The position numbers and the translations under genes were made by a program. This document shows, piece by piece, positions 1-64,000 of a stretch of 64,000 nucleotides of DNA (position 1 is the stretch's first letter; every line of letters starts with the position of its first letter). Location: the sequence record MW760841.1. One strand, given 5' to 3'. Below the pieces are notes generated by a model, which had not been told where the DNA came from, made no database searches, and saw nothing but the letters and a program-made list of their open reading frames with translations.

Positions 1-279
1 GAATGGACTGATTGTAAACCCATTGGGTAAGTGCTAAAATGTGGTCGGTGAAGTTCGCCGGAACTTTTACCTTTACCGTATTACGAAGGTAAGTAAAAGC
101 TACGAGTTCGACCTGGAGGTTTGCCTTCGCGAAGACTTGTTTGTTCTTCGCAAAAGACTTGGACAGCTCAGACAATTCACCGACGGGAGCAACCGCACCT
201 TCGGCATCATTATCAGTCAGCGCTGTAATATTGATAAAGCCTTGTATATCTAACATTATAAGAAAACTCCGAGGTGAGC

Positions 280-2105: not shown

Positions 2106-3631
2106 TGGACATCAAAGATGTAGATGTTGCAGTCATCTACACCGATGGTAGCCACCTGACTACCCCGCCCGGAACCGGCGCGGGGATTCACGGCTATTTA
2201 TTTAATCACGGTGTACTCGAGGACACTCAGGCGTATCGCTACAACGGTGCGACTGAGCATGTCACCACGATAGGCTACAAGAAGTTCCCGCAGGATGTGA
2301 AAGTCCCTGATGTTCCGGACACAGTGGAGTTCGTGGATGCGTTCATTCCTGTTCCTGCACACTTCTGGTCTGACGTGGCTGAACTGACAGCATTCATTAC
2401 GCTGTTTGAATCTGCGCCATTCCGTGCCAAGAACTATATCGTCTACGTCGATGCCTCGTATCTGGTGAACGCCTGGAACCAGTGGATTGCTAACTGGAAA
2501 CAGAAGAACTGGACGAAAGCGGACGGCAGTCCTATCGGCAACCGGGATTTGATTATCAAAATCAGTGAAATCAAAGACCGTCTGCACAAAGAAGGCCGCA
2601 GTGTCAAGGTGATTAAGATTAAAGGTCACGCTGGACATTACGGTAACGAGCGTGCTGACCAGATGGCCGGTAAAGCGTCGGCGATGGTGGCTGCTGGGAA
2701 AGGAATTGAGTACCGTCCGTATTGGTCAACCGAAGAACTGCCGGAGGAGTTAACGCTCCAAGAGCCAGAAGAATCGATTGCGCCGGGCATTACCAACTTC
2801 CCACTGCTGACCCAGACCGTGAAGTTCTGTTACCCAATGGTCAATGAACCGCACCCCGAAGTAACGATTCACGGGGAGCAGTGGAAGTACATGTTCGGCG
2901 GTAACCACGCAAAGAACAAGGACGACGTGGTCTTCATTGGTAAGATGATTCCCGATGCACAATTTGCGGTCTTCTTTAACAAAGACGGCTGGGATAATGT
3001 CTATACCTTGGTGAACACGCACTGTGATCGTGCCTGGGACGGTGTGCCGCGCTTACAGCGCTTCGACCCGGTGGCTATCGTGTATAACGATTTCATCAAA
3101 CGTAAGAAGTTTGTTGATGCCACGAAGGACGGCTTGCCATTAAGCCATATGCCGCTCAGCGACGACCGTAACGTCTGTATGTACGATGACTTGCTGATTA
3201 CCCGTCTATTGCGTCCGGCGTTGCTGTCGTATCGTGCGCTGGAGATTCGGGACGAGTTAGCGGGCTGGTTGCGTGATGCTATCGAAGGACAGAAAGACGT
3301 GGTGTTAAACGACATCACCGACTTACTGTTTGACGAAGCAGGTAAACCGCGTAAGGACTTCTACCGTACGGTTGACCGTTCGTTCAGTGTGAAGGTCGGT
3401 TATGCGCACAGTGAGAAAACCATCCCGGTTATCTTGACGCGTGGGACTGACATTCCAGGACGTACTGAACTGAACCGCATCAAAGAGCCTACGGGGCGCT
3501 ATTACGTGGCAACACGTCGTACGCAGGAACGTTGTGTAGAATACGCGGTGGTCTATATCGGTGAGCAGCATCATGGCCTGTGGTGTGGCTATTACGCAAA
3601 CAAACGTATCTTGCAGGAGGAAGAGGTGTGA
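2105..3631 (+). CDS. rnhA: Ribonuclease HI with long C-terminal extension
   Basis: RNase HI motifs IYTDGS, AELTA, VDASY, WKQKNW, NRDL, IKGHAGHYGNERADQMA in the N-terminal ~190 aa. Confidence 0.85.
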   Translation: MDIKDVDVAVIYTDGSHLTTPPGTGAGIHGYLFNHGVLEDTQAYRYNGATEHVTTIGYKKFPQDVKVPDVPDTVEFVDAFIPVPAHFWSDVAELTAFITLFESAPFRAKNYIVYVDASYLVNAWNQWIANWKQKNWTKADGSPIGNRDLIIKISEIKDRLHKEGRSVKVIKIKGHAGHYGNERADQMAGKASAMVAAGKGIEYRPYWSTEELPEELTLQEPEESIAPGITNFPLLTQTVKFCYPMVNEPHPEVTIHGEQWKYMFGGNHAKNKDDVVFIGKMIPDAQFAVFFNKDGWDNVYTLVNTHCDRAWDGVPRLQRFDPVAIVYNDFIKRKKFVDATKDGLPLSHMPLSDDRNVCMYDDLLITRLLRPALLSYRALEIRDELAGWLRDAIEGQKDVVLNDITDLLFDEAGKPRKDFYRTVDRSFSVKVGYAHSEKTIPVILTRGTDIPGRTELNRIKEPTGRYYVATRRTQERCVEYAVVYIGEQHHGLWCGYYANKRILQEEEV

Positions 3632-4386
3632 TAAAACTCATCAGTGAAACGTTGACATTGCACAGTCAAACGTTGATGGAAGCGATGAAGGAATACGCCT
3701 ACAAAACCTGGGTCACCAACTCGGGAGAATGTGGCGTAGGGAACGTGATTCCCAACTTCGATCATGATGAGGTGAGTCGTGAAGGAATGGCGGGTGTGGT
3801 CGCCCGCATTCTCATGGATGCCATTGCGGCTATCAATGCGAACTGCGATTACATCTACCATCCCGAAATCACGTTGCCACAAATTCCTACCGAGAAGTAC
3901 CGGAAATGGCGAGAATCTGGCAATACCGGGATGTTCACCATCATGGAGATGTACGATGCTCATTGTCGTGAGTTGAAAATGTCTCCGTTGCTCGAAGGGG
4001 CGATTAAGTGGTACAGCACTCGCTTTGTCGATGAGATTTATGGCATCGTCAGTCGTAACCACGCCGACTTTGGCACGGACGGCAGTACCCTGGTGTACAT
4101 CACCCATCCGATGCTCACCAAGATGTTGTTGGACGGGCGGGTGATTCTACCGTTGCTTGAATTCGACGACTACACCTTTGGTGCCGAAGGGGATAGCATC
4201 GACGACATCCGTGACACCATCATGGCCACCGAATACGGCTTCCTGGTGCAGGACGAGATGTACGTGTTGTTCGACAGTGCCCCACGTTATATTCTGGATA
4301 ACGATGATCAGGACTCGGAAGAACGTCCGGGTGTTGAGCTTTGGACTTTGAAACCTGAGGTCATAGAGCAAATCAAAAATCTCTGA
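3628..4386 (+). CDS. Hypothetical protein
   Basis: Long ORF; GTG start overlaps the RNase H stop (GTGA). Confidence 0.7.
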   Translation: MIKLISETLTLHSQTLMEAMKEYAYKTWVTNSGECGVGNVIPNFDHDEVSREGMAGVVARILMDAIAAINANCDYIYHPEITLPQIPTEKYRKWRESGNTGMFTIMEMYDAHCRELKMSPLLEGAIKWYSTRFVDEIYGIVSRNHADFGTDGSTLVYITHPMLTKMLLDGRVILPLLEFDDYTFGAEGDSIDDIRDTIMATEYGFLVQDEMYVLFDSAPRYILDNDDQDSEERPGVELWTLKPEVIEQIKNL

Positions 4387-10046: not shown

Positions 10047-10100
10047 TCTTTTTACAGCTGTACCCTGTGTTATGTAGACGTCCAACTGAGGTAATTGAGA

Positions 10101-22690: not shown

Positions 22691-22697
22691 GGGTGTT

Positions 22698-22982
22698 ATG
22701 TCTGGGAAAGATTTATCGCAGTATCTGGTAGAAGGCAATCGTGGGACGACCCCGCACAAAAACGATGCTGTGGTTCAGGAAGAGATGAACGCGCAGTTTG
22801 ACCGTGACATTGGTCGTGGTTTGACAGCCGAAGCATCACAAGCGCAATTCAACCAACAGAATGCACATCTGGCGGATGAGTTCGACCTGAGCCATCTCGG
22901 CTTAGAAGGTGTCACCGTAGAGGGTGGCGTAGACGCTGCAATGGACGACTCCAGTTGTCCTAGTGGTGCCTGCAAAATTTAA
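22698..22982 (+). CDS. Small acidic protein ending in an NrdA-like C-terminal redox tail
   Basis: GAGG RBS; ends DDSSCPSGACKI-stop versus E. coli NrdA QDDGCESGACKI-stop. Confidence 0.75.
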   Translation: MSGKDLSQYLVEGNRGTTPHKNDAVVQEEMNAQFDRDIGRGLTAEASQAQFNQQNAHLADEFDLSHLGLEGVTVEGGVDAAMDDSSCPSGACKI

Positions 22983-61922: not shown

Positions 61923-62462
61923 ATGTTCCTGTTACAAACCCACACCGATATTCTCACTAACCCAATCTACCGCACCTGCAAAGAGGCGAAAGAATTCCTG
62001 TTCCCCGTTAGCATGGCGCATATGGAAGCCTTACGTCAACGTCGTTACCTGGCAACGATTGAGAACGGGGTAGCCGTCCGTCTGCAAATGCTGACCGCCG
62101 TGGATAACACCATCTACATCTACGTCGACAAATATTCGCCGTTGATTGAGAAAGAGCTATCAATGGCCCTGCGTCGTGATCTCCATGAATACCCAGGGAA
62201 TTTCTTCGTGGCCTGTGAGGCAGAGGGACGTGACCGGAACATGCGGGCTGCGACGTTTGGCTTTACCATTCCGGAAGAACTCCAGTCACTGAATGCGTTG
62301 ACGCCTATCATCGGTGAAAAGAATGCGCGGGAGCAAATGCAATTCATTAGCCAACTCCAACCGGGTCATGAATTGGTGATGAACTGGACACCGGATGAAT
62401 TGATGGCTGAGCACTTCACGACGATGGGTCTCAAATTCGTCACGGTGTTTTATCCGCTGTAA
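61923..62462 (+). CDS. Hypothetical protein, paralog B
   Basis: 179 aa, AAGGAG RBS, similar to the preceding ORF. Confidence 0.7.
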   Translation: MFLLQTHTDILTNPIYRTCKEAKEFLFPVSMAHMEALRQRRYLATIENGVAVRLQMLTAVDNTIYIYVDKYSPLIEKELSMALRRDLHEYPGNFFVACEAEGRDRNMRAATFGFTIPEELQSLNALTPIIGEKNAREQMQFISQLQPGHELVMNWTPDELMAEHFTTMGLKFVTVFYPL

Positions 62463-62466
62463 AATC

Positions 62467-62497
62467 GGGGAGCTTCGGCTCCCTGTTTTTTTTGTTT
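62467..62497 (+). terminator. Intrinsic terminator
   Basis: GGGGAGC-TTCG-GCTCCCT then a T-run. Confidence 0.85.
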
Positions 62498-62521
62498 CAA
62501 GCCTTGGTACTGCTCACTTTT

Positions 62522-62552
62522 TAACCAGATATTGGTTACAAAATAACCAGTG
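62522..62552. repeat. Palindromic repeat copy 1 (TGGTTA-N5-TAACCA) with an extra half-site
   Basis: TAACCA-GATAT-TGGTTA-CAAAA-TAACCA-GTG. Confidence 0.8.
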
Positions 62553-62800
62553 TGAAATACCGTCTAGAATCGCTCAGAAAGCGTTGTTACCCTAACCCGG
62601 TACACTTGGGTTCCCAAGGGGTCATTCTCTTCACACAGAGCGATACAGAAAGAATTAGCGCCATCCCCGACCCACCGTTCCGCCTCCGACGTCATCCGCC
62701 CGCGCCGAATCGCCGATCTAAATCTGGGTACCGCTTTGCGGAATTGGGGATTTAAAACAGGGAAATCTGACAAACGAATCTTCGTGAGTTTGTCCTGGAT

Positions 62801-62820
62801 TTGGTTATTTCTTGACCAGT
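62801..62820. repeat. Palindromic repeat copy 2 (one mismatch)
   Basis: TTGGTTA-TTTCT-TGACCA-GT. Confidence 0.65.
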
Positions 62821-62979
62821 TTGACTAGCCAGCCTCCAGCTGGCTTAAACTCATTCAAACAAAAAAATTCTCTTTTAAAAACAGTTACTTACATTCTATC
62901 TACCCTACCCCTCCGGGGGTAGGGAGAAAAATCCTTCTATTAGACGCGATCACGCGTCACGCGTTTCCTCCAGGATCTT

Positions 62980-63072
62980 TTAAAAGAATATATTTATATT
63001 AATTATAATTATCCCGTAGGGATAATAATTAAATATAATTAAAACTAATAAACTCTTTGAGTTATAAATTAC
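62980..63072. other. Extremely AT-rich segment with a central inverted repeat (origin/unwinding-element-like)
   Basis: Nearly all A/T around ATTATCCC-GTA-GGGATAAT (63008-63026), unlike the roughly half-GC coding DNA. Confidence 0.6.
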
Positions 63073-63119
63073 TATCGCGGGCACGTAGGCGCGCGTGCGA
63101 GTCCTTAGCTGCCGAAAAG

Positions 63120-63140
63120 CTGGTTAAAAAATAACCAGTG
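63120..63140. repeat. Palindromic repeat copy 3
   Basis: CTGGTTA-AAAAA-TAACCAG-TG; 63121-63140 matches 62533-62552 at 19/20. Confidence 0.8.
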
Positions 63141-63168
63141 AAAATCCAATTACAGATTTCCCCAGTGT

Positions 63169-63773
63169 TATGCTCGCTGGCATGACTCGACCCGTGCCGG
63201 TACCAGATACCCCTGGCTGGAAAGTTTGGCCAGGGGGCTTTTCGAGCCCAACTCATCAACAGGGTGAGACGCGATTTGCTGGCGAACGTTGCCGGGTACG
63301 GTCCCGCTGTGTCGATCCCACAGCGGGTATTTTTCTCATCCTGACTGGATTGCTGTGTTCGCCTCGGTAACTCGGGGCGCTTTTTCGAGAGTCCTCACCA
63401 GGGTTGTCGACAAAGCGAAATACGTTCGACCTAACACCGACGTGATTTTGTTTTAGTATGTTCAAGAGTTTCAGGTGCCCGTTACAGGGTTCCGCGGTAG
63501 CCCCAGGCAGAGCCTTGCCCTGGCGGACCGTCATCCGTCGTCCTTGCCGGTGAACTTACCACTGGCCTATCGTCGGTGAGCGTTCTCCTGGGGTGCGACC
63601 GAATTCGGCGTTGCGTCGAAAAACTCCCAGCGTGTAGAACCGCTGGGTTGGGGGAATATCTCCGAAGCGAGGTGGTCCATTGGTCTTGGCGGCTCGGAAA
63701 GACGAGAGGGGGGTGTCTGCACTCTGCGAAGCGTTCGGACATCGCTGAACCAAATTCTAACCAGGAGATAACC
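63169..63773 (+). ncRNA. Candidate structured ncRNA(s) or long 5' leader
   Basis: No credible ORF; hairpins at 63210-63236, 63235-63249, 63303-63327, 63360-63379 and CCCAGCG/CGCTGGG near 63630; TATG-type motifs at 63166 and 63453. Confidence 0.4.
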
Positions 63774-64000
63774 ATGAGCGCTATGACGCTTGAAGAGCTA
63801 CTACCAACGCGAATGCCTTGCGAGGTATTCTTCCCACGTAACGGCGAACCGGTGCCAGTTGCCGAGGTTGTCACCTGGTTACGTACCGGATGTCCGAAGA
63901 TTCACCACCTGCACGCTGCCTGCCTCGAGAAAGTTTTCGAGACGGTTGCATTCCAGCCATTCCCCAACGGGGAAGCGATGGCGGTTGTCGGTATGACCCG
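63774..64000 (+). CDS. Hypothetical protein, 3'-truncated by window end (not in ORF track)
   Basis: AGGAG RBS at 63763-63767, then ATG 63774, open to the end: MSAMTLEELLPTRMPCEVFFPRNGEPVPVAEVVTWLRTGCPKIHHLHAACLEKVFETVAFQPFPNGEAMAVVGMT. Confidence 0.7.
   Translation, partial: MSAMTLEELLPTRMPCEVFFPRNGEPVPVAEVVTWLRTGCPKIHHLHAACLEKVFETVAFQPFPNGEAMAVVGMT

Follow-up and report, generated by a model that had tools for sequence, protein, structure and literature searches.

A predicted small-RNA gene with stacked terminators, possibly also the leader of a conserved structured RNA, in the jumbo phage pEa_SNUABM_4

We propose, with a probability of roughly 0.55, that the non-coding interval starting at 63150 in Erwinia phage pEa_SNUABM_4 holds a prematurely terminated small-RNA gene, which at the same time acts as an attenuating terminator-cascade leader of a conserved structured RNA located further downstream. 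In the proposed model, a phage RNA polymerase would read the interval as a non-coding transcription unit, with promoter P1 starting transcription near 63172 and with the terminators T0 near 63243, T1 near 63335 and T3 near 63386 each stopping part of the polymerases. These stops would release 5'-derived small RNAs, for which lengths of about 70 nt (T0), 163 nt (T1) and 214 nt (T3) are predicted from a start at 63172. Polymerases moving past T3 would enter a folded RNA of about 365 nt (63381-63746) and then the gene at 63775, and the terminator cascade would set how much of the downstream RNA is made. We infer the start site, termination, the read-through fraction and the function of the short RNAs from sequence and from comparison with related phages. 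The initial annotation of this DNA had described a discrete small RNA or an attenuator, and both descriptions fit: the presence of an own phage-type promoter and of intrinsic terminators is backed by sequence and comparison, and since the unit runs into a conserved RNA whose first helix uses the U-run of T3, a role as leader or attenuator is suggested in pEa_SNUABM_4.

All positions refer to the window, i.e. the whole stretch of 64,000 nt that was analysed, unless record positions are named. The window matches record positions 185194-249193 of MW812338.1, the record of pEa_SNUABM_4, with 100% identity, and its last base is the last base of that record. With a genome of 249,193 bp, pEa_SNUABM_4 is an SPN3US-like jumbo phage of the genus Machinavirus. 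The features discussed below are the following.

63150 to 63172, plus strand: promoter P1, class TTAC-N15-TATG, with the predicted start site at G 63172
63176 to 63201, plus strand: 5' stem-loop, stem 1 (CUGGC/GCCGG), -13.1 kcal/mol
63210 to 63243, plus strand: T0, hairpin 63210-63236 (CCCCUGGCUGG/UUGGCCAGGGG) followed by GCUUUUC, -20.1 kcal/mol
63260 to 63343, plus strand: invariant arms CAGGGUGAGA (63260-63269) and UCUCAUCCUG (63334-63343), a helix predicted by RNAalifold that could enclose T1
63303 to 63335, plus strand: T1, predicted intrinsic-terminator hairpin 63303-63327 followed by UAUUUUUC, found in the terminator scan, -15.9 kcal/mol
63349 to 63359, plus strand: conserved single-stranded motif AUUGCUGUGUU, directly 5' of the T3 hairpin
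63360 to 63386, plus strand: T3, hairpin 63360-63379 followed by CUUUUUC, found in the terminator scan, -11.3 kcal/mol, the last predicted terminator
63380 to 63415, plus strand: helix H-A, with the T3 U-run as its 5' arm, -10.6 kcal/mol
63381 to 63746, plus strand: conserved structured non-coding RNA of about 365 nt (the block), assigned from covariation in 13 sequences
63775 to 64000 and on to record positions 1-150, plus strand: next protein gene, with its ORF open at the window end

The small-RNA interval lies inside a gap of 1.3 kb without annotated genes (62463-63774), which is flanked by gene _00291 on one side and by the unannotated gene starting at 63775 on the other. The latter is absent from the annotation of MW812338, apparently because its ORF spans the record origin; its orthologue in SNUABM_9 is annotated (pEaSNUABM9_00094), and the product of that orthologue matches phrog_20200 (function unknown) with E = 3.8e-47; all translations were made with genetic code table 11. 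ARAGORN returned no tRNA or tmRNA gene in the window, and an array of 12 tRNA genes starts about 1.2 kb past the gap in pEa_SNUABM_4. Comparison with relatives showed that the non-coding gap is conserved better than the 3' end of the neighbouring gene. Upstream of the small RNA, an AT-rich island (62944-63100) is located between conserved boxes, whose sequences in relatives are UCCUCCAGGAUCUUUUAAAA (left) and GCGCGCGUGAUCCUUA (right), and holds a small conserved hairpin (UAUCCC-GUA-GGGAUA); boxes and hairpin are common to SPN3US and Erskinevirus. Additionally, a palindrome (CTGGTTA-AAAAA-TAACCAG) is found at 63120-63138, 12 nt 5' of P1, which is kept in ChrisDB and SNUABM_9, altered in Caitlin and missing in the IMG/VR contig L053.

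The signal at 63150-63172 reads TTACAG, 13 nt and TATG, so that the TGTTATG noted at 63166-63172 by the initial annotation is indeed present and constitutes the end of a longer TTAC-N15-TATG signal. The likeness which had been seen there to a site before an upstream operon (window 10052-10074) is real as well; however, the identity of the gene at that site as uvsX is unconfirmed by Pfam. TTACAG-N13-TATG occurs at window 10052-10074 and at record 915-937, and around the latter copy 30 nt (record 907-939) are near-identical to the P1 site, at a distance of 37 nt before the phage tRNA-Trp gene. Within the genome, TTAC-N15-TATG is found at 21 sites, compared to 2-6 sites at each of seven other spacings (Poisson p of about 3e-8), and 10-12 of the 21 sites fall into the approximately 7% of the genome outside ORFs (p of about 7e-7 to 3e-9, based on a crude ORF map). 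The majority of these sites display a T-run ahead of TTAC and GTG ahead of TATG. P1 is 83-100% identical in relatives and has a positional homologue in every lineage examined, and the other copies in the genome comprise the promoter only, without a further small-RNA paralogue.

Late promoters of phiKZ, which are used by its non-virion RNA polymerase, carry the motif T(-3)ATG(+1) with G as position +1, and its middle promoters carry an AT-rich element near -24 (PMC7598289). Because of this late-promoter motif, we place the predicted start of P1 at G 63172 (PMC7598289). P1 resembles the phiKZ promoters in the TATG at the predicted start and in a T-rich element ending in TTAC at about -26 to -19, whereas, unlike in phiKZ, both promoter elements occur together in pEa_SNUABM_4, at a fixed spacing of 15. 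Judged by these elements, P1 is a phage-type promoter of the phiKZ-like non-virion polymerase type, with a predicted start site. A host sigma-70 promoter at P1 was rejected, since a consensus scan of 63100-63180 gave no site and the spacing between TTACAG and TATGCT amounts to 13 nt and not 16-18. A third exact GTGTTATG in the window (22693-22700) was likewise rejected as a promoter copy: a GAGG ribosome-binding site is located 5' of it, TTAC is lacking 15 nt upstream, and the ATG at 22698 is the start codon of a 94-aa protein.

Apart from the class of P1, we observed a second, AT-rich motif class, AGATAGATATTA(T/C)C..GTGA with the variant ATATATATTACCTAGGTGA, at 16 plus-strand sites, most of them immediately 5' of genes (window 4388, 45793 and 59623 and 13 other record sites). 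It is probably an early class read by the virion polymerase, and it is absent from the P1 locus. Outside the window, divergent TTAC-N15-TATG promoters are located at record 165773 and 165974 (minus strand) and 167089 (plus strand), and about 1.6 kb without a long ORF follow the minus-strand pair according to the crude ORF map; this region may be another non-coding locus. Also outside the window, a gene-free gap of 770 nt (record 3101-3868) precedes the main tRNA array and contains a TTAC-N15-TATG promoter at record 3709, with tRNA-Tyr following after about 140 nt.

The ATG inside the TATG of P1 opens a frame of 66 aa (63170-63370), and the interval could on this ground be read as a small protein gene, to which we assign a practically negligible probability. 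No ribosome-binding site precedes this ATG, and the predicted start site of transcription lies inside it. Moreover, stops or frameshifts disrupt the 66-aa frame in three of the four relatives (ChrisDB, Caitlin and L053), which refutes the protein reading and agrees with the earlier view that no credible ORF is present. Alignment indels are not multiples of three.

The body of the small RNA was compared in five sequences, namely pEa_SNUABM_4, SNUABM_9, ChrisDB, Caitlin and L053. It was found only in this closest subclade, comprising four distinct sequences besides that of pEa_SNUABM_4, which match with 72-89% identity; a search of IMG/VR for more homologues returned only Caitlin, ChrisDB and the more distant L053, and a metagenome scan contributed nothing beyond members of known lineages. 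Among these close relatives, the RNA body is 46-94% identical, below the values for the promoter and the downstream block. Folding of the 225-nt stretch yielded z = -2.94, with 1 of 200 shuffles being as stable, and the scan of 62300-64000 returned 6 terminator-like sites, compared to 2.1 +/- 1.5 in shuffles.

Both the hairpin at 63210-63236 and the CUGGC/GCCGG stem (63176-63201) proposed in the initial annotation could be located in the sequence with the energies given above. Of the two terminator-like hairpins with T-tracts described there, both are real and display compensatory changes in relatives, but their count has to be raised to three, since the hairpin at 63210-63236 has its own U-run and therefore represents a third terminator-like unit, T0. 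Across the five sequences the U-run of T0 has 4-6 U, with 4 in pEa_SNUABM_4 and 5-6 in Caitlin and L053; T0 is likely a weak terminator or pause site. T0, T1 and T3 are all kept with compensatory changes in SNUABM_9, ChrisDB, Caitlin and L053. In the T0 stem, C-G at 63211-63235 is replaced by U-A in two lineages, and L053 has C-G instead of U-A at 63214-63232; for T1, pair 63308-63322 is present as U-A, G-C or A-U across relatives. T3 consists of a hairpin of variable sequence followed by an invariant CUUUUUCGA in 13 of 13 aligned sequences, with double changes at two stem pairs. In stem 1, pair 63177-63200 is C-G in two and A-U in three of the five sequences, and the upper part is broken in two of the five. 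Compensatory base changes, for which the earlier annotation had asked, are thus seen in T0 (two pairs), T1, T3 and the 5' stem.

For the whole small RNA, 95.6% of the cells are paired in the five sequences, compared to 41-43% with slid partners. Double changes occur at 4 pairs only, a number that is reached in 83 of 500 shuffles, with five sequences and with controls that carry no correction for phylogeny; pair counts as well as slid and shuffle controls were computed by script from RNAalifold output. The helix formed by CAGGGUGAGA and UCUCAUCCUG displays no covariation for or against it, because all of its pairs are invariant in the five sequences, and a local hairpin of 63252-63257 with 63263-63268 constitutes an alternative to it. 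Within the single-stranded motif AUUGCUGUGUU, the five close sequences agree at each of the first 9 nt (AUUGCUGUG), and L053 deviates at the last two. We additionally observed that the flanks of T0 and T1 (63237-63275 and 63288-63302) resemble those of T3 (63380-63415 and 63349-63361), with CUUUUCGAG..CUCA..CAGGGU shared by the 3' flanks of T0 and T3 and UUGCnGnGUnCG by the 5' flanks of T1 and T3. The terminator cascade therefore seems to have grown by local duplication.

The mutually exclusive stems described in the initial annotation had been taken as a hint of a switch, and under this reading in its full form, the interval would control the gene at 63775 as a terminator/antiterminator switch responding to a ligand or factor. 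The hairpin at 63235-63249 is present in pEa_SNUABM_4 (-7.5 kcal/mol) and overlaps T0 by two bases; however, it is broken in three of the five sequences. When the nascent RNA is folded to minimum energy, a pairing of 63281-63287 with 63357-63363 occupies four bases of the T3 5' arm, but this anti-T3 pairing is cut to 5 bp or lost in relatives and shows no covariation. The long-range pairing of 63188-63200 with 63292-63303, which had also been suggested, is not kept in relatives. Since the alternative pairings are not or only partly kept, the comparison lends no support to a switch. The proposed Rfam check gave no match at gathering score in the window and chance-level matches only at E up to 10 in 62300-64000, with no riboswitch family among them, and the conserved block precedes different genes in different genera, with a new promoter in SPN3US. 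We therefore consider a switch highly improbable.

All Seoulvirus, Erskinevirus and Machinavirus lineages examined share the arrangement of promoter, terminators and T3 hairpin with CUUUUUCGA, and the same layout followed by the conserved block is also found in Parshik-like phages and in uncultured contigs. In more distant contigs, the promoter displays a spacing of 17 and is sited 180-345 nt before the hairpin with CUUUUUCGA. In Asesino and phiEaH2 (Erskinevirus) and in SPN3US (Seoulvirus), the homologous promoter leads into an RNA with terminators at about 95-110 and 210 nt, the second of which is preceded by CUGCUGUGUG on its 5' side, and a second promoter of the same class, P2, leads into an RNA of about 95 nt ending at a hairpin with CUUUUUCGA. 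Since this second promoter follows the homologous RNA, the RNA appears to behave as a discrete gene in Erskinevirus and Seoulvirus. The RNA is homologous in three genera, though strongly diverged, as shown by two motifs common to them, CGAUGGCAU close to the 5' end and UGCUGUGUG immediately ahead of a terminator. In the Parshik group (Parshik, pSal-SNUABM-04 and SNUABM_6), the promoter is kept and the RNA body is missing, with the P1 start located about 45 nt before a single hairpin with CUUUUUCGAGAAUCC; this weighs against the proposed unit, as the RNA body is consequently dispensable or replaceable.

These lineages bear on the question whether the RNA might be a stand-alone trans-acting sRNA, e.g. 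a base-pairing or protein-binding regulator, for which adjacency to the downstream RNA would be incidental. The own promoter and terminators are compatible with such a function, as are the two terminators followed by the separate promoter P2 in Asesino, phiEaH2 and SPN3US and the presence of CGAUGGCAU and UGCUGUGUG in three genera. The near identity of P1 to the tRNA-Trp promoter furthermore points to co-expression with stable RNAs. However, the RNA is lost in the Parshik group, its body is less conserved than the promoter and the downstream block, and nine-mers complementary to phage gene starts are not enriched (16 compared to 10.3 +/- 4.1 in shuffles). Weighing both sides, we regard a purely trans-acting sRNA as rather unlikely.

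Downstream of the T3 hairpin, a block of 270-530 nt follows in every lineage examined, closing with an almost invariant core about 30 nt long. The genome of pEa_SNUABM_4 contains a single copy of it. For the block, 13 distinct sequences with 42-94% identity could be aligned, originating from Machinavirus, Erskinevirus, Seoulvirus and uncultured jumbo-phage contigs. The consensus contains 61 pairs, of which 95.8% of the cells are paired, compared to 38-51% with slid partners. Double compensatory changes are found at 22 of the 61 pairs, and none of 500 shuffles reaches this number (13 sequences, controls without phylogeny correction). The alifold energy amounts to -56 kcal/mol on the plus strand, compared to -26 kcal/mol for the reverse complement, and 112 G-U cells are present on the plus strand. 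On this comparative evidence, the block at 63381-63746 is a plus-strand structured RNA that constitutes a new family. No Rfam family matched the block in seven phages, and the block region of six homologous loci gave no common Rfam match, with one match at chance level (E 0.038, contig L061). Seven matches to a 19-base core in bacterial genomes are about as many as expected by chance, and none was confirmed with the block profile.

The first helix of the block, H-A, connects the structured RNA to the terminator cascade, as its 5' arm is the U-run of T3. Its inner pairs covary (C-G with U-A and A-U; U-A with C-G), and the outer pairs are invariant or changed on one side only. Neither promoter class has a motif in the stretch from P1 to the block. 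Given this and the use of the T3 U-run by H-A, the block would be reached by polymerases that read through T3. The T0 of pEa_SNUABM_4, with just four U, speaks against the cascade, and if all three terminators were efficient, little read-through would remain.

The surroundings of P1 also suggest an origin-associated unit, in which transcripts from P1 would activate or prime replication in the 1.3-kb non-coding region and the terminators would define or limit primer 3' ends. In agreement with this, the unit adjoins the AT-rich island, which is dense in inverted repeats and includes three palindromes, conservation of the entire gap exceeds that of the flanking gene, and the downstream RNA carries an invariant G-rich core. 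However, the AT-rich island is located upstream of P1, so that transcription runs away from it, GC skew tracks gene orientation and marks no origin, and the G-U pattern on the plus strand together with the covariation points to a folded RNA and not to a DNA signal. We consequently judge an origin-associated unit to be distinctly unlikely. Similarly speculative is a combination of both ideas, in which the cascade would meter the large RNA (63381-63746), this RNA would organise or prime replication at the AT-rich island and the short RNAs would be abortive or regulatory by-products. If true, this long shot would mean that relatives of the nucleus-forming phiKZ-like phages have an origin under RNA control.

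Our preferred reading remains a small-RNA gene that may double as the attenuating leader of the downstream RNA. Public sequencing runs, compared over 881 bases, contained only DNA-like contigs of relatives, mostly ChrisDB-like, and no RNA run, and a literature search found no paper on the locus or on any transcriptome of the SPN3US group. SPN3US-like jumbo phages, which are related to the nucleus-forming phiKZ group, rely on polymerases of their own for transcription, and hardly any of their promoters and non-coding RNAs have been mapped. The locus yields a testable promoter rule for this group, TTAC-N15-TATG, plus a second, AT-rich class, and represents a clear candidate for a small RNA ending at stacked terminators. 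It is accompanied by a strongly covarying RNA family that is present in all sampled Seoulvirus, Erskinevirus and Machinavirus lineages and listed in no database. For phages of Erwinia amylovora and Salmonella, knowledge of such control regions aids annotation and engineering.

Several known systems can be compared to this arrangement. Species 1 and 2 of phage T4 are small stable RNAs that are encoded together with tRNA genes and processed from a tRNA precursor made by the host polymerase. The RNA described here is likewise phage-encoded, non-coding and co-located, and probably co-expressed, with phage tRNAs; unlike species 1 and 2, it has a predicted promoter and terminators of its own and lies 1.6 kb upstream of the tRNA array. 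Primer or regulator RNAs at origins include RNA II and RNA I of ColE1, T4 ori(uvsY) and the T7 primary origin. With these, the locus shares a promoter-driven, structured RNA in a conserved non-coding region beside an AT-rich element, whereas in pEa_SNUABM_4 this element is located upstream of the promoter and no antisense partner was found. Like ROOL and GOLLD, which are large, ornate RNAs known from phages and prophages, the block is a large non-coding RNA with strong covariation that a phage encodes close to its tRNA genes. Unlike these two, which are Rfam families, it has no Rfam match here or in six homologous loci, and with about 365-530 nt it is smaller.

A further setting to be compared is that of the 5'UTR-derived and intergenic sRNAs from the nucleus-forming jumbo phages 201phi2-1 and phiKZ, which have their own RNA polymerases and display termination within 250 nt of the start (PMC11512511). 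As an experimental precedent, 11 sRNAs of 201phi2-1 have been defined by termination just after the start site, one of them before a tRNA (PMC11512511), and in phiKZ one sRNA has been predicted only and is unconfirmed (PMC8244752). For pEa_SNUABM_4, the in silico analysis likewise places predicted terminators less than 250 nt after the start, with no conserved ORF in between. The RNAs of 201phi2-1 were defined by sequencing, whereas that of pEa_SNUABM_4 is a prediction by sequence analysis and comparison among relatives. In contrast to the sRNAs of 201phi2-1, the unit predicted here features three stacked terminators and leads into a large conserved RNA.
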